This document shows, one piece after another, positions 1,388 to 43,925 of a stretch of DNA of 64,000 bases. Positions within the stretch are counted from its first letter, which is position 1. The number at the start of each line of letters is the position of its first letter. This stretch comes from Pelomyxa schiedti (Eukaryota; Protista; Evosea), in NCBI GenBank assembly GCA_020536535.1, contig JAHLWZ010000231.1, forward strand, positions 1 through 64,000. The letters run 5' to 3'. Under the pieces are notes generated by a model. It saw only the letters and a program-made list of their open reading frames with translations, was not told the DNA's origin and searched no databases. The position numbers and the translations under genes are program-made.

Positions 1388-4300
1388 ATGAGCAACGCAC
1401 CGTTTCGTGTGGAAGAAGAAAACGCCATCAATGCAAGGAAAAGAGTCGCTCGCGTTGCACTCGAAAAGTTCCTACGGAAGGTATACTTCAGTTTTTACAT
1501 TCCCAATCTAACACTCACAGCCCCCAAACACAACACAAGTGACAGAAACAACCGCACCGACTTCGGTATCTCATCCGGCTTCGTCAACATCATTGTCACC
1601 AAAACCGGTGGCTATAAAAACTCTCACAAGGCCAACATCACATGCTACGGAAGGAGGGAGAGCTACTACAGTCAGCACGTGTACAGTTGTAACAGACAGG
1701 GGTGTAAAGACTGAAGTAGGAACCCCTGTGATTGCACAGTGCGGTTCCGGAGGTGGAACAATGGCATCACTGACAGCATCAAGCTCTAGACCACAATCAC
1801 AATCAACTTCGTCGCCGGCGTGTACAACGAGCACATGTACAGAACGAGGAGGAGCAAAGACCGTGGAAGCAGAACCACTTGTGATTGCGATATGTGGGTC
1901 TGGTGGTGGAATGAGGGCAATGCAGAGCATGGTTGGGTTCATGGACGGCCTCAGCCACATCGGCCTGCTGGACGCCGTCACATTCGCCGTTGGTCTCTCT
2001 GGAAGCACGTGGTGCCTCAGCCAGTGGGTTTGTGACACGGAAGGCAACCCATTCCATGGTAGCACTTGCGCTGATGATCCGTGGCGGGCCGGTGGGCCCC
2101 CTTTCGATGAGAGAAGGCACACTCACTCGGAGCTCAAGAAGATGCTGAGCCAACACTCCTGGTTAACTGCATGTGGTGAGGTAGCCGCTTGCGTTGTAAG
2201 AAAAGGGAGCCTGGTGGGTGGATGGGCTGAATTTCTGTCGGATGTCGTGTTGAGCAGGCGTCACCTGGAGTCGACAAGGTTCAGCCAATGCAAGAACCGC
2301 CTTGCTGACGGATCATTCCCGATTCCAGTGTGCACTGCCATCAGCGAAAATGAACAAGACAACTGGGACTGGGTTGATTTCACACCGTTCACGGTGAGGA
2401 AGTGTGGAACCCCTTTGAAGGCAACTGAAAACCTCAGTGATGACACCCTCCCACATTTGATGGCTGTCTGGGGCAGTTTCTTTGCCGTTGATTGGAAGGG
2501 CTGGCATGCAGAAATCCCGAAAGTACTAAAGTGGCTACCGGCTATATCCACTGTCCCGGAACCTGGGCGGAAAAGAAAGGCAATGGCCTGCGAAACTGCG
2601 TTTGAAGAGAACATCGGGAACCTTCGAGACGCAGGCATTGACTTCAATGTTCCTCTTCCGGCTCTCCGTGGTCGTGGTGTTGATGTTGTTCTTGTCATGG
2701 ATGCCTCCGAAGGTGCTAAAGGCGCTAAGGAACTCGCACTTGCAGTGAAAGCTGGTCATATCGGCGTTGCCGAAGAGGATAAAAACTTACTTACTAGGGA
2801 TTTTGGACCTCGGGAAAGGTGCCGGTTGTTCTATCCCGAAAGAACTGGCCAGCCCGCAATTGCCTATTTCTTGTGCCACACACAGAGTGCCACTGTAAAC
2901 TTGCAGTACGAACCACAGCACGTCGAGGGTATTGTTCAATCAGTGTGCAATGCTGTTATTTCTGAATCTGGGACACTGAGGCAGTTTCTTAGACGGTTAG
3001 AGGACGCCAAGAGATCTGCTGTGATTCCTGTCATGCCATGCGGCTCCAGGCAAAGCCCTCTGAGGGAGGTCGTGCGCCCGGCGTTGAAGCAGTGCTACTG
3101 TAAGTTGTATGAGCTCATGGCACTGCTGGACCACTTGGGCCACATGCAACATCGCCCGCCATTCTCTGTTCTTTACACTTCCCTGCAGGTTGCAGATGCC
3201 GGTATGCATGGTGGCCTCGGACAGTCCGTTGGAATAGATGTGCTGTGGAGTGCTGTTCTACGAACTGGGAACACACGGTGTGTTGTGGAAGGTGACCCGG
3301 GCTCGGGGAAAAGCACTCTGGTCAAATTCCTGGCACGCGAACAAGGAACCGTTGAGATGGAACAGCAATTCGGAGCCATTGTTGTTGTGGAATTACGGGA
3401 GCTCTGCAGCACTGTAATACCTTCACACGAGCCTCTCAGTCTACGCAACTGTGTCCAGGAATACTTACTGCGTGTGCTCAAATTGGACTGCTCCATCGTC
3501 CAGGCTCTATTCTTGGCAGACCCAAATGATATTCTGTGGGTCTTTGATGGGTTTGATGAAGTCGACACACGGAGATGGGAGAGTTTTCTGGACGAACTTG
3601 TCCACAATCACTTGGATTGGGCACCTTGCGTTATGGTCACATCAAGACACGACCGCCGACACCAATTCTTCACTGCTGCAACCACGGTCATCGTGCAACA
3701 GTGGAACCCTGCAGAAATTGACACTTACATCAAAAGATACTTTGACTACGTCAATGAATTTGGAAGCACCGCTGATTCACGAGCCATACAGGCTTCTAGT
3801 GTTTGTAAGTTTATTTCAGACAACCCAGAGCTCGCAAGAATGGCCAAAACACCACTTCTCTGCGAAATAATTTGCACTGTTTACAGCAAGATCCAGAGTG
3901 ACACAAACCCTAGTGTGACAACAATTTTCAAACACCTTGTCGCCTATGCTTGGGAACGCACAAAAACCAAACTAAGCATCGCTGATGATAGTCCAGGTTG
4001 GCACCAAGATATGAGGGCTGCCAACTATATTCTCTGTGAAAGGTCATATGACACCACTATTGGCACCATGGCTGACGACTTGGCTGGAGTTTTTCGGCTT
4101 AGCATGAATAAGCCAATCGAAAAACTGGCATGTTGTTGTGGGTTGGTCAGGCGGTGTAGCCGGTTTGACTATGACACAAATGTCCACGGGTTCCGGTTCA
4201 TTCACAAGACTTTGGAAGAATTCTTCACAGCTTGGCACATCTGCAGCAAAAAGAATGCGCCCATTGCCACTGCATTACTTGATGGAATCTTTGTTGATCA

Positions 4301-5801
4301 AAGTACCCAACAAAGTATCAAATGGTCGCCGAAGGAGCGCAACCTCGTTCTGTTCATTGCAGGTTTCATCCACAGTTCCAAGAAGCACTATATCAAGCAA
4401 ATCCAAGAACCCTTCATTGGATCATTGTTGGCAGTTTTCAACTTCAATTATAAGACCAACTATCAAGAGCTTAGTGCGGATCTATCTCGCGATGCATCTC
4501 ATCCAACACGTGACAGGTGGCGTGTTCAACTTGGCCTGGATGCCGTTGTTGCAGCCGTTACACTGCTTGGTAGTTATGCAACTGAGCGCTTCCTGAAGAG
4601 CATCAGACCATATGGGTGGCAGGCATCTCGGGTGATTCCAAGATCTTTGACCTTGAAAGTTGCACCTTGGATATATCGCTTGCTTGCAGAGCCTTGTGCT
4701 CGATATGGCAATCTAGACATGCTAAAAAGGGTAGTAATTTATGCAGCAGGTGAGATGGATCAGGCTCTCTTGGAAGCCCATCTTTCTGGTCAACAGCGCG
4801 CCATTGATTGGCTCACTTCCATGAACGCCGGTGGCGTTTCCATCAGAATCCCAGCCAGGATGGGAAATCACCAAGCTGTTTGCCAGATGCTGGCACAGGT
4901 GCAAGATATTGAAAAGAAAAAGGAGCAGGCCCTCGAGGCAGCATTTGAGGCAACCAATAATGGGCAAGCTTGCGTGTTGAGTGAGTTGTGTAAACTCTAC
5001 TCACCAAATGATCTCCTAGATGGTATACTAACCATAGCTTGCAAATTGATAGATCCCCGAATGGAAGAACTGTCAAAAGTTCTTAATACAACGCTTGTAA
5101 GATGTTCTTGCTTCAGAGGAGTAACAAAAGTCTACCTCCCAAGCTTTCTCTCCAAAGAGAAAGCCAAAAAGATGTGTTTCGAGATTGCCGAATCTCTTCC
5201 AGCCCTCACTTCCCTGGACACATTTACGATGTTGCCTGAAGATGGCATACGTGCCATTGCCAAGTCATGCGGAGCTATCACTGAGTTGCGCTGTCGCCTG
5301 AGTCTGAACGGTTTTTGTGGCGCTGCACCGTTTTTCCAGTCACTCCGTTCTCTGCACTTGGACAACGAACTGAAGGGCAGCCTACCAAATCACTCAGTCG
5401 TCCTTCCATCACTCACTTCTCTTTACTTGTATTCTGGTGTATCATTACTAGCTCCTTTGTGCCCAGGACTGACATCTCTCACTTGCATCTCCTCTAAAGG
5501 TGTCACCAACGAAGATGCTTGTGCCCTGGCACGCTACTGCACTTATCTCACAACCCTTCGCTTGTACCGCACTACCAGTGAAAGTGTGGCTGCCATCGCC
5601 AATCACCTTGTTTCCTTGACAGACCTTACTCTCGAAAATTATGACTTTATAGAGGGACCAGTACCGACAGACGTTGACGCGAACCCCATTGTTGTGCACT
5701 GCCCTCGTCTACGGAGGCTTTTTCTGGGTCCTACCATTCACCCAACGTCATCGAGTTCGAGAAACTCCAATGGTGCCCCTCCCAAGGTAAATCTCCTTTA
5801 A
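1388..5801 (+). CDS. NLR-like STAND protein: cPLA2/PLA2_B phospholipase - NACHT - ankyrin-like repeats - LRR (~1457 aa; exons 1388-1480, 1521-5801)
   Basis: Exon 1 (EEENAINARKRVARVALEKFLRK, resembles the helix preceding the cPLA2 core) splices in frame over a 40-nt GT..ctaac..AG intron (1481-1520). cPLA2 motifs: IAICGSGGGMRAM, GLSGSTW (catalytic Ser, ~1992-2012), FPIPVCTAI, WVDFTPF, DAGIDFNVP (catalytic Asp, ~2628). NACHT motifs: GDPGSGKST (3291-3317), WVFDGFDE, VTSR, TPLLCEIIC, FIHKTLEEFFTA. Then ~4 ankyrin-like units (ARYGNLDML, ARMGNHQAV, ATNNGQACV) and Cys-type LRRs (IAKSCGAITEL, LAPLCPGLTSL, LARYCTYLTTL, VVHCPRLRRL). Confidence 0.9.
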
Positions 5802-6550
5802 TACTCCACGCAAAGTTAATGCACTCATTAGACATCACCCCAAAACCACTCAAAACCAGCCACTGTTGACAGGTTTCCCTTCTTTATCCTATTAGTGTCT
5901 CACTTTCACTGTCAGTGAACAAGGAGGTCCGTCATGGACTGAAAAGACCGCTACGGTTTGCTACCCCGTACGAATCTCAATAGTAACTAGTAAAATAGGG
6001 AGATTTAAGCATCACCGAGGGAGGAAGTTTCTTCAAGGACTCTGGATCCTCTGGCGTGGACCTCACCACTTGGCGAGCTCATACTTCACACCGAAGTACG
6101 GATCATAGGCACTCGGTACCCCATCGACTTGTCTACTTGTTTCCAACTAACTCAAAATCAAAAGAACTCCAATACAACTGAGCCACCAAAGTGGGATCCT
6201 GATCAGAAACACCCTGGTGATGCTGGTGATGACACTCTCCAACAAACCAAGTCCAGTGAGTTCCTCTTCTTTTTTTTGAATGCATTTCCCTTTTCTCTAA
6301 CCAAGTGCATGGCATCCCAGGTGATCAACAGAAACAACAACCCTAAATTATGCCCTGGCCTAGTCATTAGCAGGCAGTTTCTTCTGGCTGTTTTGCCTTG
6401 ACACATAACGTGGATGGAAACATGAAAAAATAAACAAACTTTTTGAGAGGAAAATAAAAGAATCCCGCGCTTTATGGAGAAACAGAGGCTTCTTTTTTCA
6501 AAAACCAACAAGTAAGGGCACATTTCTCTTTACTTTCTGTTGACAATTAA

Positions 6551-35476: not shown

Positions 35477-38400
35477 TTAGGCCTTATTTGGCAAAACTTT
35501 GAGTGGGGCATGGCTATCCCCATTCTCAGAAAGAAGGAGTACGTGTTGCTTTGCCCTTGTGGGGTCTCCCCAGCAGTGTACAGCCACAAGGGATAAGCAC
35601 TCGGGCTCCTGCGAGGCCTGGGCCCTCCTTCTTGTGATTGTGCCCAAACTCCCGGTGCCGCTCCGGGTAAGTGCCCTAAGAGGGGGAGGGGGCGGCGCAG
35701 ACGAAAGTGAACCAGGCCCGGGAGCAGGAGGGGCACCGGGAGGCGGGGGGGTGGCTGGCTGCGGAGTGCTGGTGAGCGCCGAGGACAGCGGGGATGGGGA
35801 TGGGGATGGGGAAAGGGAGGCGGAAGCTAGCGGGGATGATGGAGCTGGCGAGGAGGCGGGGGGAGGCGAGGGTGTGGCTCTGCTGGCCAGCATGCGGGGG
35901 CTGGAGCGGGGTGAGGAATTGTTACCTGAGGGGGTCCCTGTCGTGGGCTCCGGGGTGGAATTCTTCCATAGGATGAAGGCCGGAGTTTGGGTTATTTGGG
36001 CTATGGCGTCGAGGATGCCAGCGGGCTTGGATGGTTCCGTTTTGTTGGTGTTGGCAAGTATATTGAGGGTGTGTGTGTACCCATTCCAGCTGAAGAACCT
36101 CTCCACAAACATACAAAACACTTGTTGTCCTTGGCACCAAACATCGAGAGTCTTTTCACACGGTTCCACTTCTTGAAGATAGAGTGAACTAAGCTTGGTG
36201 TACTCACAAAGAGCCTTCTCTTTCGTGGAAGAAAGAATATCCGTAGGGGATGCGGTATTGGTTATTGCCGAGCCACCTAATATTTCAATAGCTTGCCGTC
36301 GGAAATTTTCACAGCCTTCTAAGTAAGACTTTTTAACTGCAGTTATGTGCGGCCAGTGTTGTTCTAGGAGTTCACAAATATTTTTTTGGAATTTGCCTAG
36401 TAGAACGGCCTTGATCTCAGTTGCAACTATATAGCGAATCTCACTTTGAGAAGAAACTGAGAGGAGTTGGAATATTGCCCTATCCCTCTCTGGGCTGGGC
36501 TGGAAAAATGTTTCCTCATAATTGCTCACTTCAATAATAGTCTTTTCAAGGCAGAAAGAGAACTTAGTGCTATGCACCAGCCCAATATGTGTAACTGGAT
36601 CCGAAGTTACGTGAGTTTTTGCACCTCGCTGCTTCAGTAGTAAAGCATTCAAGGGAGTCAATCCCTGAACGAGATGAATATCTGCACCCCCAGCCATTAC
36701 AGGACATGAAGTTGCACTCGAAATACGTCTTTCGCAAATGCTGGTGAATTGTCCGTCATGGAGTTGAAGTTTAAACCAACAAAGACCTGACATTGTTATG
36801 ACAACCAGCAAATTCCTCCAAGCTGTAACTGATGAAATGTGTTCAGGCAACTTGATATCGGCAATGAACCTCTGAAGTTGTGTATCAAAGACAAGTATTA
36901 GACCACCGCCACATGACAAGACAAATAATTTCCCATCCTCACCAGCAAAGGTGCTGAGTTGTGGAAGAGGGGCAGTGGTTACAAAGGAAGGAACTATCAG
37001 TGGGTGACTTTTCTCTGGTTCTGTCAATGAACATTCGGCAAGACTATTTATGAAGAAGATATTCTTTCTACTGTCAAAAGCTACAAGAGCCTTTGTATCA
37101 CGGGAAAATTCTATGTGTTCGATGGATTGCCAGCAGTTTACTGTGTTTTGAGCCTCAATATCAAAAATAAGGGAGACAGTCTCAAATCCTTTTAAATTCC
37201 ACACAAGCAAGGTTCCGCAAGGTGAGAACTTAGAGTCACAGTATACTCTAGTTGTGTTCTTAAACTCGACGGGTAGTGGTGTGACTGTGCACTTCCCATC
37301 CTTAAGAGATAAAAGAGTGAGCGTCCCATCATCCATATCCGTTGAAGCTAGGAGTTCTTTGGTCATAGAATAAGCACTTCTGCTTCGAATTAATTTAAGT
37401 GGTGTTCTGAGACAAGCGAGTTCCACCCAAGGTGGATCAAGTTGCCAAAACTTTACTTTATGATGGGAAATGAGTGCCACTCTGTCGCTTAATAGAACTG
37501 AACTACAATCTGCAGAATTGTGCTTCCTAACTGTGTGTACTTTCTCTTTATGGGATGTACTCCACAGAGAAAAAGAGTCATTTCGGTCGTCAAGAAAGAG
37601 GCTTCCATCTTGTGTAAAGTGACCCCTAAAAAATAGGTTTACAGCAGGAACGATGCTCGATTTGTTTATTGCTTTGACAGAATTGATTCCTCGGAGAAGA
37701 ACGCAATTTCCAGAGTGGAATGCGTAATATCGGTTATCTGGTGAGATGGTTTCAAATAATATGGCATCTCTGAACAAGGAGAAGCCATTTTCTGCATCCC
37801 AAATTGACATGACATTCCGTGTATCCCCAGAATACCCCCTAGAAAGAATTGATGCCTGAAGGGATATGAGAGTCGTGAGATTGCCAGAAAAGAGGAAATT
37901 CCCATTCGGAGAGAATTCAAGCAAGTCAATGGGCAATTTTATTTTTGATGCATGAAGGGTAAACAGGGACTTGAGTTCGTTGACTTCATTCATTTCAATT
38001 ATCTGTATGGTGCCATTTTGTAGACCCATTGCCAGTAACTTATTGCCATACGTTGTGCAGCAACACACAGGTGCTTCACAAATGACCGACTTCTGGAGCT
38101 TCTTTCCAGTTGCAAAATCGAGCAAGGAAACCTCCTCACAATTTACAGAGACGGCACAGTCAAGGAAAACGTTATGCATTATGGGAATACTGCTCTTCCA
38201 ACTCCCTTCCCAGACCTTGGTCCAGCTTGTAGTATCCCAGCATGATAGAGAATCTTCAGTTTGCACCACAAAGTATTTATTACTGAGTGAGAACTGGCCT
38301 GCGGCATGATGTGGGAACTTAAAGCATAGAGAACCACTGTCACTGTCATAGACCAGAACTGCCTTTGCCATTGTGGAAGATGTGGCCAGGAATCGGCTGT

Positions 38401-41400
38401 CACCTGAAAAATATGGAAGACTTAAGATTCCAGAAAAGCTTCGCTTAAAAAGCTGTACGTGACTCTGAGCATCAAACATCACCAACTCTTTGTTATTGGT
38501 AGCACATAGTTTCTTGCCATCAGGAGAGAAGAAGCAGTAACCATAAAAAGCTTTATCCAAATTGTAGAATTGGATTTCTCCATGACCAGAAAAATCAACC
38601 AAAACAACACCTTCACCAGCCACCGACATCAGTTTGTCCTTGGGTGAAAAACTGCAGTAACAAACAACGTCAGTCTCGAATTTAATTTCGGCCTCACCAA
38701 AATCCACACCACCCATTTTGCACTGAGATAAATTGGTGTTTTGCAAACAAGTCTGCTGCATATCACATCCACTCAGATCAGAGTGACTAAGATCAGCAGC
38801 TGAGAAAAACCCACAACTTAAATTTGCATCTGGAATTTGGACTCCTTGAAGGTTGCACTCACAAAAATTGTGGTTTGCTTGAATTAAAACTGTGATAGCA
38901 TTGCTTGCTGCAGTTGCGAATGATGAATTCTCACTTCTCTCAGTTTTTAATAGTCGATTTCTTGATTTGTCAACAAACATAAGAAGTGCATCCCTGAAGT
39001 GTAGATGTCTATCAGGCAGAGTATCGTCATAGAGAACAAGTTCTGTAAGAAATGCCGTTACTTCGGGGTGGGCTCTCAGTGGTTTGAAGTTCAAAGCCTG
39101 GGCAGCAGGAGGAGGGACAAAAGCATTGCACAACTGAGTCTCTCTGCGTGAACAAAATTTCCTTATGCAGGATCTTAATTTTAGGAGAGCTGCCAGTGGG
39201 AATGAGATGCATTTTCGGGCATCTTCCACAACTGTTTTTATGTTGACAATTCCGTGCTTTGTCCCCTCAGCAATGCATGCGTCATAGGGGCTTTCACCCC
39301 TCCCGATTCTGCGTATTACTTCTTCCAAACTTAAGGGGTTTCCAGAGTTTTGTGAAAGTGTCATCAGAACCTGGTGAACAAAATTGCTAGATATTTTAGA
39401 CCTGGTTGCCTGTAGCGCTTGTCGAATACGAAATTCACGGAAGTGAGTGTAGGATTGTCCAACGCATTCAAGGCAGTCATGGTAGATTTTTTGAGCAATG
39501 AAATACTCCATGATTGTTTTATGAAGGAACCTTGTGAAAGAATTGTTAATTTAGCGAATTACAAGTTTGTTAGATACATGTAGTTGTTGGCTCCCTTTTG
39601 TTGCAATATACAACCGGATCTAACAAGTTCCACAGCAGGATTTATACAACTGAAAAATCTTTCAAGTTGATGGTGCATGTCAAGAACTCTGGCTCCATCC
39701 TTTCTAGTCCACTTGGGAGAATAGCGTATAAGACTTGTCCCATGAGAAAACATGTAAAAAGCAAGTTCTTCACTAAAATATCTGTAGTCTCGAGCAATGT
39801 CACCCCTGACCTATATCCACCAATTAATACCAGGTCCAGCTATAATTATAAAGGAACCTGGAAGTCAAACATAATATTGTCCTCACCAGGGTTCTCACAG
39901 GCCACAGAAGCGTCATTTAATCTCTCAGGGGTAATTTTGGATTTCTCTTTTTGAAACCAATGCTCGGTAAATCGATCGTATAGCTCAAGGCGTGTCAATT
40001 TGTACGAATTCCTTGCGGATTTATGCTTGTGTGCCCCACGAACAGAGTCTTCAAGTTTTTGTTTCACCTCATCATGTTGATATTTTTCCACAAGAGACGG
40101 AAGAATTTCCATAAAAATAGACAGGACAAATGGTGTCTTTATGAGGTCTTTGATGCCACCAAGCTTGGCCTCAAATTCTTCATATAGGTCCGCACAGAGA
40201 GCTGCTTGACCTCCTCCATAATGCCGGTAATTAGCAACATACTCCTTGATTTTTCTATCATCAAACACTTCAATATGCCAACATAGAACTTCTTCTGCAT
40301 TCAGCGTGGAACTTTTCAATGTGGTGAATTGTTTGTTCCAATCTTGGCTGACCGCTTCAGCTCTACTTGTTATTAGTAGTTGTGCGTTCCAATCCGCGAA
40401 ATTGTTTGTTTTGCATAGATTAACCCCAGGGTCCAATTTGATCTCATCAAAGCCATCGAGAATAATCAACAGACGCTGTTGCCGAATTTTGAGGATTTCA
40501 ATATTCTCAAATGTAAAGCCCTCGTTCAACAGAAATTTTTCCAGCAAGTTTTTCCTGTGCCAACAATTAGAGTGGGCCAATTAGTGGTGTGTACATACTT
40601 AGGATCTTTGACTGTGGCCAAAGAAATTATTATCGGGAAAATATTGAATTTGTCGAACTGTTCCCACAGTTTCTTGGCAATGAATTTTGCAAAGATGGAT
40701 TTTCCAGTACCACCAGGGCCTAAAAGGAGCAGTGTCTTAGGTCTTTGCCCTGGGAGTCCATTTGAAGTGCTTGTCAGTTGAAGGAAATCAGAATAAAATG
40801 TAGAACTCAGATCAAAGCATTTTTCTTTTGGATCATTGACCTCTAACTTTCCTTGAGTCTCGATGTACAACTTGAGTTCTTGCTCAAGGTTGGGGTCACT
40901 AAAAAATTTATCTCTGAACTCCCTAATCTGGTCATCAACCGAACCTCTAAGCAACTCTTGCAACACTTTCTTAGCTTTTTGCAAAAGTTCTCCGTTTGCA
41001 TCCTCCTCATCCGCTTGGATTTCTGGAAACTCCGCGCGAGAGTCATTAAGGATAGATTTCAGTTCCACAATGGGGTGAACTTGAAAAGAAGCACTCTCAG
41101 AACTTCGTTCACATTGTATTTGCCCAAGTAAAGTGGCAAAGGGCTCCAACTTGCTTGATATGTAGGCAATTGCCTTTGCGGGAAAGATATTGCTGTTCGC
41201 TTTTAAGGTGCCCTGTAGGTGCCTAATCCTCTCGTCATTCCTTGGTAAATTTTTTCTTAGCTTGGCTGGTACAGGTTGGTCGAAGTCAAAAGAGGATGTC
41301 CCAGACATGTCAATAAAGACCCAAGTTTCCCGCATATGAATGTATGCAAGGAGCCCTTGGGATTTCCTACTGGCTTTAGCTTCCTCTATAGCTCTCTCAA

Positions 41401-43925
41401 ACTGTTTGCCACTGCTCTGAAAGCTTGCTACTGCAATATCGACTCCCAAGTGTCTTGCAAGTTGCTGTTCTTCCAGTACTATGAATTGTTCCACATCTTC
41501 TAGCTGTTGCATTGCGCATAATTTGATTGCTTCTGGAAATTTTGTGTATTCCTTCAGTCTGTAAAGTATCAGAACTTGCAGCCCCCCATCAGCAGAGCTG
41601 CTAGAAAGTGTCTCATCTCCAGGCCCCTGTCCCAACAAAACTTTTCGCATCTGTTCAATACACCACTTCTTTAATTCCAGATTGCCAAGAAGTGGTTTTG
41701 ATCTCACAATACCTGCGTTTTCATTAAGACGTCTCAACGGTGTAGCAATTATCGGTCTCACCATCGAGGAGATTCATATAGCCAATAGTGAAATCCTGTT
41801 CTCCAAAGACTCTGGACGACACCTTGTTTGCCAATCCTGACACCTTCTTCTTAGCATCTGACACAATTTTGGAGGCAGTTGGTTTATCTTTGATAGGCCC
41901 CAGAGCTGAGGAGTCTGTAGTAACTGGCTTCTCTGTGAGGACATTTCGTCCATGTACTCTGGTATTCCAAAATATCTTTGCTGCGTGGTCTACTAACAAG
42001 AGCCGTTCTTGTGCAGTGGAGGAAAGCCTGCTTAGTTTAAAAAGGTCGAGCTCAATTAAGAACAACTGATCCATCCAGCTTTTTTGTATATTAGTTTCTT
42101 CAAGAGAACTTTTTACTCCTTTTGCTGCATCAACAAGTGAGGAGATGTCCCATTGATTAACCAAATTTGCTAGACCTTGCATCACCATAACACCTAAGAA
42201 CAGTATTGAGGACGACGTTCCTGGGTTTTAGGGAGTCCTACCATGTCCAACCCATTTGACAACACTATCAAGCAATTCTGAGGTATCTTCAATTCTAAGA
42301 AGATTCTGTTTGGCAACTTCGGCAGCAGCAGCAACATAACACTCCTTTCTATTGTAATCTGCAAAGCATCCTTTTATTTCATTGAGAGAGGTGGCCATTT
42401 GGGTTTTGTCTTCCACCCTGGGGGAACGTGAGTGCCAAGGAGGAAGTGATAGGACAACTTGAGTTGGGAGACCCCTGCAGCCCATAGCGATCTCAGAACA
42501 TTGCTTATTGCCTGAAGAACACAGTAAACTCTCTCGGCATTCGCACTTTGGGTATGCATGCCAGCCACTTTCGATGTTAGTACCTGAAGGACCTTCGTCA
42601 TCCTGAAGAGTAGTTGGAAGTCTGTGGGTATTGCAACTACTCACTGGTCTTCCGCAAATAGGTCACATTTTGCTTCGCTGAGAACAAATGCCACAGCATC
42701 GACCATTCCAACATTGATTAGGACATCTTGGTTCACTGCATTGATGAATGCATCCAAAAGTAACTGGACAACTTCGCTATCATCTACAAGTGCTAGTTGC
42801 TTCACTTCGTCAATCAAAAATTGCGGTTTGACTGGCGTTAAGGCAAACTGATTGATGACTTCAATGCACAATCTCCTTAAGGGATCTTTTCGGCTAAGTC
42901 GCTGTGAAAGAGCTTGTGCAGGCATGTCAATAACCGGCCTTCCACTACCTGTCACTGTGTCCAAAAGCAACTTTGCAGCTTGCTTCACGGTGTCAAAAAT
43001 GCCTTTCAAGCTGGCTGCAGTGCTCTTAGACTCAGTTGGAACTTTAACATGCTTGTTGAGCTCCTCGAGTCGCACTTGAGCAGTTTCTTTGATGCCAGAC
43101 GAGAGGATATGTGAAAGCTCATTCACACTGGACACCATTTTGATTTTTGTCGCATCCGACACGTGCTGTTCACTACGTTCCGGTATAACTTGCAATGGGG
43201 CAGCAGTAGATGGTGAAGTAACATTACTTGAAGATGTCCCTGCGTCCGGAGTAGGAGCCAATGTGTTAGTGGGCTTAGACACATCCTCTTCCCTGATTGT
43301 TTTTGGCAGTGAATTGCAGGGTTTTTCTGCTAGAGTGGGAGGCAATTCAGGAGGCACCCATTGAATGGTAACGTGCAATTTGCCTTTTGGGACATCCTTT
43401 TTAGTCTTAAGCTTTCACAGTAATATTGGTAGTATACAGTTAAGTCAAGCAACTGGTCAGAAACTTCTCTGTCAACCAAAGTGCTCAAATCACATATTGC
43501 ACTACCAAGAGGAGTATCAGCTTTGTGTTTGACATGGCTCTACGTGCAGTTAAAGGATATCAGGTTTTTTTGACATACCCAAACTCTAAAAGCTATAGCT
43601 TTAGGTTTTTCCCTTGTTTCGTACACAAACTCTTGCTCCCACTATTAAAAAAATCAGCCTCAGAGAAAGGGGTGAAAAAAAAAGGGAGGAAAACCCTGGG
43701 GGTTGTAGCTGAGCTCGATAGTTTCGTTTCGCCAATCAAAACGTTGCCGTCATGCACAACGATTTCAACGAAGGGCAACGCTAGACTGTGCGTTTAGTTT
43801 TGCTTTTGTGGCTGCAAGGGGATTTTTTTTTTGTTGCTTTCTTTTCGTGTTGGTGTTCAACCTCCTTCGTGATTGACAGGAACAAGGTGCCGAGCACTGA
43901 CAACTGACACTCCCAGAGTGCCCAT
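35477..43925 (-). CDS. Giant STAND protein: C2 domain - helical/ARM-like region - NACHT - pentapeptide repeats - WD40 propellers - C-terminal domain
   Basis: ATG 43925 MGTLGVSVVSARHL...PLGSAICDLSTL...GKLHVTIQW (C2). Walker A LLGPGGTGKS, Walker B LIILDGFDE, LITSR, TPFVLSIFMEILP, FLHKTIMEYFIA. AASNAITVLIQAN, then pentapeptide repeats NLQGVQIPDANLSCGFFSAADLSHSDLSG...GVDFGE. Many FSP[DN]G WD repeats. Confidence 0.85.

Follow-up and report, generated by a model that had tools for sequence, protein, structure and literature searches.

The window analysed here, a stretch of 64,000 nucleotides from contig C231 (JAHLWZ010000231.1) of the 52-Mb assembly of the anaerobic amoeba Pelomyxa schiedti, carries at positions 1388-5801 of the plus strand a gene in which a phospholipase is joined to a receptor module. 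This is one real gene, whose product resembles the NOD-like receptors (NLRs; NOD, nucleotide-binding oligomerization domain) among the signal transduction ATPases with numerous domains (STAND), carrying at its N terminus a cPLA2-type effector which appears catalytically intact; we infer with moderate confidence that it would serve cell-autonomous defence by damaging membranes. The order of domains, namely cPLA2, NACHT, ankyrin repeats and leucine-rich repeats (LRRs), had been read from the DNA alone in an earlier reading of this stretch, called here the original prediction. It was borne out, as PLA2_B and NACHT were recognised by Pfam, the ankyrin repeats by a family profile and the LRRs by a structural model and its fold matches. 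The lipase was also confirmed to lie N-terminal to the NOD module, which is the effector position of an NLR. The features that carry this conclusion are as follows.

1863-3005, plus strand: cPLA2-type (PLA2_B) lipase domain, by Pfam, alignment to 1cjy, family profile, Foldseek and invariant catalytic columns
1896-1916, plus strand: lipase motif GSGGGMR
1992-2006, plus strand: lipase motif GLSGS
2628-2636, plus strand: lipase motif DAG with the catalytic Asp
3240-4622, plus strand: NOD module (NACHT nucleotide-binding domain, NBD, with helical and winged-helix domains), by Pfam and family profile
3276-3743, plus strand: Pfam NACHT
3291-3314, plus strand: Walker A, GDPGSGKS
4641-5057, plus strand: about four ankyrin-like repeats with the signature EPxARYGN, by profile A5 and helix pairs in the AlphaFold2 (AF2) model
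5127-5636, plus strand: 7-8 LRRs of the F-box / RI-like (Cys-containing) class, by the AF2 model, Foldseek and VIA

The lipase domain scored 28.6-29.5 bits with Pfam PLA2_B (PF01735), whose cut-off is 23, and 645 bits, at 1863-3002, with a family lipase profile. Among PDB sequences searched with phmmer, human cPLA2-alpha (1cjy) was matched at 1.7e-12, and cPLA2 delta was matched too. When the protein was aligned to 1cjy residue by residue, GSGGGMRA stood against GSGGGFRA, GLSGSTW against GLSGSTW and DAG..N.P.P against DSG..N.P.P, the last segment containing the catalytic Asp549 of 1cjy. The catalytic elements, namely the oxyanion loop with its Arg, the Ser and the Asp, are intact, just as had been claimed from the motifs. 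These catalytic columns are invariant in seven family members (the six Pelomyxa paralogues and a Mastigella homologue), and across 15 diverse members the catalytic Asp is invariant and the catalytic Ser is found in 12. A model of the domain, built with AlphaFold from seven sequences (predicted local distance difference test score, pLDDT, of 56), gave cPLA2 delta and alpha as its top PDB folds in Foldseek (E from 4e-14 to 7e-12, that is, of the order of 1e-14 at best), and patatin-type folds (VipD, PlpD, ExoU, patatin, CapE/CapV) appeared only at 5e-5 or worse. By both sequence and model, the lipase is of the cPLA2 type and not of the patatin type, as originally proposed. The catalytic domain comprises about 380 residues, with a cap that is shortened and poorly modelled, and phospholipase activity of the protein is predicted.

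The claim of a complete NACHT module held as well. Pfam NACHT was matched with 45-50 bits (cut-off 26.7), and Walker A, Walker B and the sensor Arg are present in the window gene; moreover, the Walker A Lys, the Walker B Asp and the sensor Arg are invariant in all 15 of the diverse family members. The NOD profile built from these 15 members (A8) matched NLRC4 at 1e-22, with profile positions 12-409 aligned to NLRC4 residues 169-569, followed by NLRP3 at 2e-16 and NOD2 at 6e-14. As the roughly 400 aligned positions span the nucleotide-binding, helical and winged-helix domains, a full NOD module is present, made up of the NBD, the first helical domain (HD1), the winged-helix domain (WHD) and the second helical domain (HD2).

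The repeat end required other means than a scan of one sequence. Of the four domains for which a Pfam check had been proposed, PLA2_B and NACHT exceeded their cut-offs, but the single-sequence scan of the window protein detected no ankyrin repeat, and LRR_4 stayed below the Pfam threshold in the window copy (19.9 bits); LRRs are clear in paralogues P0004 and P0013. With profile A5, made from 11 family members, the PDB matches were exclusively ankyrin-repeat proteins, ankyrin-1/2 being the best (2.5e-14) and KIDINS220, DARPins, NOMPC and TRPA1 being found further on. In the AF2 model of the C-terminal 394 residues (pLDDT 78), helix pairs give way to 7-8 units of strand and helix; the top fold matches of this model (Foldseek, VIA) are the F-box LRRs COI1, TIR1, FBXL2 and D3 (Z about 14), together with the LRRs of NLRC4, NLRP3 and NOD2.

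Selection acts differently on the two ends of the protein. Nei-Gojobori dN/dS, calculated among the window gene and the two paralogues on contig C682 (the three closest members), stood at 0.20-0.23 for the lipase and 0.21-0.35 for the NBD; the ankyrin block ranged from 0.19 to 0.67 and the LRR from 0.64 to 0.70. The lipase is kept by purifying selection, the NOD is constrained as well, and the LRR end is much less so, which is the usual pattern of NLR sensors. This gradient bears on the idea that the protein could be a housekeeping lipase engaged in membrane remodelling, with its NACHT-ANK-LRR part being a scaffold or a regulatory ATPase unrelated to surveillance. Such a role would be in line with the annotation of the gene, which is simply cPLA2, and with the failure of the genome search to reveal any cPLA2 besides the family. 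However, the full NLR-type NOD, the repeat sensors, a tandem duplication in the family and the gradient of constraint itself are hallmarks of a receptor family, and we therefore consider a housekeeping function very improbable.

The structure of the gene was taken from the window sequence and from its GenBank entry, KAH3765135.1 (P0001), which is 1,557 aa long and bears the name "cytosolic phospholipase A2"; searches were made with the main exon itself and, for the spliced protein, with this database entry. It is composed of the following parts.

1388-1480, plus strand: exon 1, 31 codons from the ATG at 1388, equal to residues 1-31 of P0001
1481-1520, plus strand: intron 1, 40 nt, GT-AG (GT at 1481, AG at 1519-1520), which restores the frame, by sequence and GenBank model
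1521-5786, plus strand: exon 2, 4,266 nt in one open frame, by sequence and GenBank model
1521-1862, plus strand: Ser/Thr-rich linker with a decayed in-frame duplication, by repeat search and alignment
5787-6346, plus strand: putative 3' tail in the GenBank model, made up of small exons with five short introns, by mapping P0001 onto the window
5832-5872, 5912-5955, 5999-6115, 6165-6258 and 6322-6346, plus strand: small exons of the putative 3' tail, by the GenBank model

The GenBank model uses exactly the junction of exon 1 and intron 1 that we read from the window sequence. The peptide encoded by exon 1 is the conserved N-terminal helix of the lipase domain; it aligns with the N termini of the paralogues and of the Mastigella transcript P0005, in which the exon-1-like N terminus is contiguous with the lipase. 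An open frame of 1,420 codons extends over 1539-5801, with its stop at 5799-5801. A single intron had been read in the original prediction; the GenBank model has six, and the five located after 5786, all GT-AG and about 39-63 nt long, bypass this stop. The putative tail thus added is 104 residues long, of low complexity, ends at 6346 and is not conserved in the paralogues, two of which (P0002 and P0003) terminate near the end of the open frame. The tail may be real or it may be an over-prediction; with or without it, all recognisable domains (lipase, NOD, ankyrin, LRR) are located inside exon 2. It might still be asked whether the gene is an artefact, i.e. a mis-joined model, a pseudogene or a contaminant, as the assembly was obtained from amplified single cells (PMC8887013), the 3' tail is putative and a paralogue on contig C951 has one in-frame stop. 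Nevertheless, the 1,420-codon frame, the same domain order in six paralogues, orthologous fused transcripts in Mastigella and dN/dS well below 1 all speak for a genuine gene, so that the artefact explanation is close to refuted.

The linker deserves a short description of its own. The duplication that it contains (1667-1766 versus 1823-1919, spacing 153-156 nt, 70-80% identity; repeat families D1 and D2) involves the first lipase strand. The upstream copy retains CGSGGG and has lost the Arg, and it thus represents a decayed second oxyanion-loop strand within the linker.

Counting the paralogues, a step proposed with the original prediction, gave six family members in the P. schiedti genome, and the fusion occurs otherwise in Mastigella, one kinetoplastid and environmental contigs, which makes the family a small one. 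Each of the six has a frame of 994-1,672 codons in which lipase and NACHT follow uninterrupted and in the same order. A domain search of this genome found cPLA2-type domains in these six alone, each of them NACHT-bound, and none that is free-standing; the six also account for half of the 12 NACHT matches. Two of the paralogues stand in tandem on C682. As the lipase-NACHT frame is uninterrupted in all six, and three Mastigella Trinity genes carry both domains, we conclude that the two belong to one frame and probably to one transcript; in Mastigella eilhardi, a relative, the transcripts carry lipase and NACHT on a single mRNA.

What such proteins do is another matter, and signalling rather than killing has to be taken into account. 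In this scenario, the NOD-gated cPLA2 would release fatty acids or lysophospholipids as second messengers, for phagocytosis, encystment or stress, and no lysis would take place. Mammalian cPLA2-alpha releases such second messengers, and the lipase described here is homologous to signalling cPLA2s. Besides, the genome search found no cPLA2 that stands alone, so any housekeeping or signalling role of a cPLA2 would fall to the fused proteins. On the other hand, six diverging paralogues with relaxed LRRs suit receptor diversification better than a single signalling enzyme, and the characterised lipase-NLR, the fungal PLP-1, is a death effector. On balance, a purely signalling role seems to us rather unlikely.

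Several further observations were made on the paralogues. The six family genes (the window gene and those at L007, L009, L010, L011 and L012) are intron-poor, as their frames are uninterrupted over the 994-1,672 codons given above; the average of the P. schiedti genome is 7.43 introns per gene (PMC8887013). The in-frame stop of the C951 paralogue (L010:5910-5912) is located between stretches of 994 and 713 codons of one frame. The corresponding protein, KAH3743955.1 (1,758 aa), is named 'leucine Rich Repeat family protein' and extends across this stop, presumably through a small intron. Paralogue P0004 (contig C820, L009) has a C-terminal SKICH domain (26.1 bits, cut-off 23.4) following clear LRR_6 repeats. 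SKICH is known in autophagy receptors such as NDP52, and its presence in P0004 hints at a link to xenophagy.

The distribution of the fusion was assessed by an exhaustive profile search over 1.84 billion representatives, which gave 1,770 lipase matches; NACHT co-occurrence was checked in the best 150 of them, and among these 150, 16 clusters also match the family NACHT model. The fused clusters come from Pelomyxa, from the three Mastigella eilhardi Trinity genes, from the prokinetoplastid Papus ankaliazontas and from about eight environmental or unnamed assemblies. Word-index searches, carried out with the whole open reading frame, the NOD region and the 15-member alignment, recovered the fusion in Pelomyxa and Mastigella only, the remainder being reached by the exhaustive search. 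In a FastTree phylogeny of lipase domains, all 16 fused clusters fall into one well-supported clade of 35 members, which also includes long kinetoplastid PLA2c proteins. Pelomyxa and Mastigella sequences form pairs in this tree, and at least three paralogues should therefore have existed before the two genera split. The nearest Atlas clusters (at least 50 members) are animal NACHT proteins without PLA2_B, with scores of about 0.8, and may be regarded as leads only.

The family is expanded in two amoebae of the Pelobiontida, Pelomyxa and Mastigella, and this would fit allorecognition or the policing of symbionts. The receptors would then guard a host protein or the symbiosome, and local lysis would follow upon incompatible fusion of multinucleate amoebae or upon misbehaviour of an endosymbiont. 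It is also in favour of this idea that PLP-1 senses SEC-9 in fungal allorecognition and that Pelomyxa, as described in PMC10579272, lives with obligate prokaryotic consortia. Yet a linked polymorphic partner gene is lacking, and a kinetoplastid flagellate and environmental contigs have the fusion as well, which makes this explanation doubtful in our opinion.

Some relatives outside Pelomyxa need to be mentioned separately. Proteins P0022-P0027 and P0032-P0040 (Bodo saltans CUG86623.1, Cryptobia borreli, a metagenome-assembled genome labelled Oceanobacter, and environmental sequences) are 1,000-1,260 aa long, have an N-terminal PLA2c and belong to the same lipase clade. Their C-terminal halves of 500-700 residues gave no Pfam match, and the alignment of these halves among the long PLA2c proteins of the kinetoplastid type is weak (10-16% identity). 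Two NACHT-fused members, P0154 (L013-L015) and P0028 (L018-L019), lie on environmental contigs that are gene-dense and reach about 120 kb. Most genes next to them are without a Pfam match, those recognised including T5orf172/MUG113, GIY-YIG, SET and DUF5710, and the contigs are reminiscent of giant viruses; scans of IMG/VR with the lipase alignment and with P0154 gave zero matches. In P0154 itself both catalytic Ser and oxyanion loop have been lost, and the LRRs are of the BspA type. An environmental protein from ENA, P0245 (2,193 aa), combines PLA2_B with many ankyrin repeats, and NACHT is not on its record. In the window itself, about 30 kb away from the gene described here, there is a candidate second STAND gene (about 35477-43925), with a sub-threshold NACHT match (24.2 bits) at 40227-40505 on the minus strand. 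It had been read earlier from the sequence as C2-NACHT-pentapeptide-WD40; if this is so, then C2 and lipase would be present on two different NACHT proteins, in contrast to the one chain of animal cPLA2.

To return to the defence function which we favour for the window gene, its action might be envisaged as follows, by analogy with NLRs in general. The ankyrin and LRR end would keep the NOD shut. When a microbial or danger ligand binds, or when a host protein under guard is lost, nucleotide-dependent oligomerisation would follow, and the oligomer would cluster the lipase domains and activate them at the membrane. As no C2 was found, it would be the oligomer that supplies membrane avidity. Membranes would be damaged as a result, for instance with a vacuole being lysed or the cell dying, and this would be a defence in a bacteria-eating amoeba with prokaryotic endosymbionts; that the host carries such endosymbionts is stated in PMC10579272.

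A number of points weigh against this interpretation. Pfam scans of the protein found neither a C2 nor another membrane-targeting domain, and a low-complexity insert of 115 residues stands between the N-terminal helix and the lipase core. AlphaFold modelling, which had been recommended, was successful only in part: the C-terminal end was modelled with a pLDDT of 78, but the model of the lipase is mediocre, with its cap region unresolved. The transcript structure is based on the GenBank model and on Mastigella transcripts. No bacterial defence model (PADLOC families, E <= 0.01) matches the window protein. Finally, as dN/dS of the LRR is below 1, it indicates relaxation, and diversifying selection is not proven.

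Comparison with known systems is helpful in judging the proposed mechanism. The fungal protein PLP-1, a patatin-NB-ARC-TPR protein, self-associates, and killing by it requires both lipase activity and the P-loop (PMC12881547). PLP-1 and HET-Z1 share with the window protein an N-terminal Ser-Asp phospholipase of the patatin/cPLA2 superfamily, a STAND NTPase and a C-terminal repeat sensor. They differ in that the lipase is Patatin (PF01734) and not PF01735, the NTPase is NB-ARC and not NACHT, the sensor is TPR instead of ankyrin repeats plus LRRs, and the host is a fungus and not an amoebozoan. The window protein is not a member of the PLP-1 type, and it is by analogy that we suppose it may work in a PLP-1-like manner. 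PF01735 is not among the 19 N-terminal Pfam domains of a catalogue of fungal NLRs, in which Patatin and C2 are listed (PMC9815663).

The likeness to the animal receptors NLRC4, NLRP3 and NOD2 extends over about 400 aligned positions of the NOD (1e-22 to 6e-14) and to the LRRs, which match those of NLRs. Animal NLRs recruit separate effectors through adaptor domains (CARD, PYD, BIR), whereas the window protein contains its own enzyme and has ankyrin repeats placed between NOD and LRR. With the mammalian group IV cPLA2 proteins (alpha, 1cjy; delta, 5iz5), which are the top matches in both sequence and fold, the window protein shares the GSGGGxRA loop, GLSGS and the Asp of DxG. Most animal cPLA2s have an N-terminal C2 for Ca2+-dependent membrane binding, cPLA2-gamma being without it; in the window protein C2 was not found, the cap is shortened and the lipase is fused to a STAND receptor. 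CapV and CapE of bacterial cyclic-oligonucleotide-based anti-phage signalling systems (CBASS) are lipases that serve in defence and belong to the same fold superfamily; their filament forms have been solved (PDB 9ion, 8zr9). These filaments make assembly-dependent activation of such a lipase plausible; however, CapV and CapE are free-standing and have cyclic nucleotides as their activators, and their fold matches are distant ones only (E from 1e-2 to 1e-1). Models of bacterial anti-phage STAND proteins (Avs, bNACHT; PADLOC) gave no match at E <= 0.01.

NLRs with built-in enzymatic effectors occur in fungi, plants and bacteria. To our knowledge, almost nothing has been established about enzyme-effector NLRs in free-living protists, and we know of no example in Amoebozoa; a literature search found none either. 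Among the papers searched there was likewise none in which PLA2_B or cPLA2 is paired with NACHT or an NLR, in agreement with the original prediction, whose author was aware of no description of this fusion. Both NACHT and phospholipase are unmentioned in the Pelomyxa (PMC8887013) and Mastigamoeba genome papers. The suggestion of a new system is only half sustained: the pairing is absent from the papers found, but the logic of a lipase mounted on an NLR is known from PLP-1 (PMC12881547). In other words, the pairing of cPLA2 with an NLR appears to be new, and the logic of placing a lipase on an NLR is not. As the gene was already deposited with both domains detectable, and as the PLP-1 logic is known, we do not regard it as a new kind of system.

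A wider interpretation, which we put forward only tentatively, is that cPLA2-NLRs form an old class of immune receptors of protists which has so far gone undescribed, with members in Amoebozoa, Discoba and some gene-dense, virus-like environmental contigs. In these proteins the NOD would directly gate a membrane-attacking cPLA2. They would be the only cPLA2s of Pelomyxa and might police ingested microbes or the resident endosymbionts, both bacterial and archaeal, through lysis of the vacuolar or the plasma membrane, and they might have been invented independently of PLP-1.

For the biology of the organism and of the family, the finding has several meanings. A complete, animal-like NOD-LRR chassis is present in an archamoeba; its pairing with a cPLA2-type lipase has been conserved in both Pelomyxa and Mastigella and is met again in a kinetoplastid, and in P. 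schiedti every cPLA2-type domain found is fused to a NOD module. The protein would offer a compact, single-chain and testable model for a lipase of the cPLA2 fold activated by oligomerisation, and it may give access to the question of how an amoeba whose endosymbionts are obligate separates its residents from invaders.

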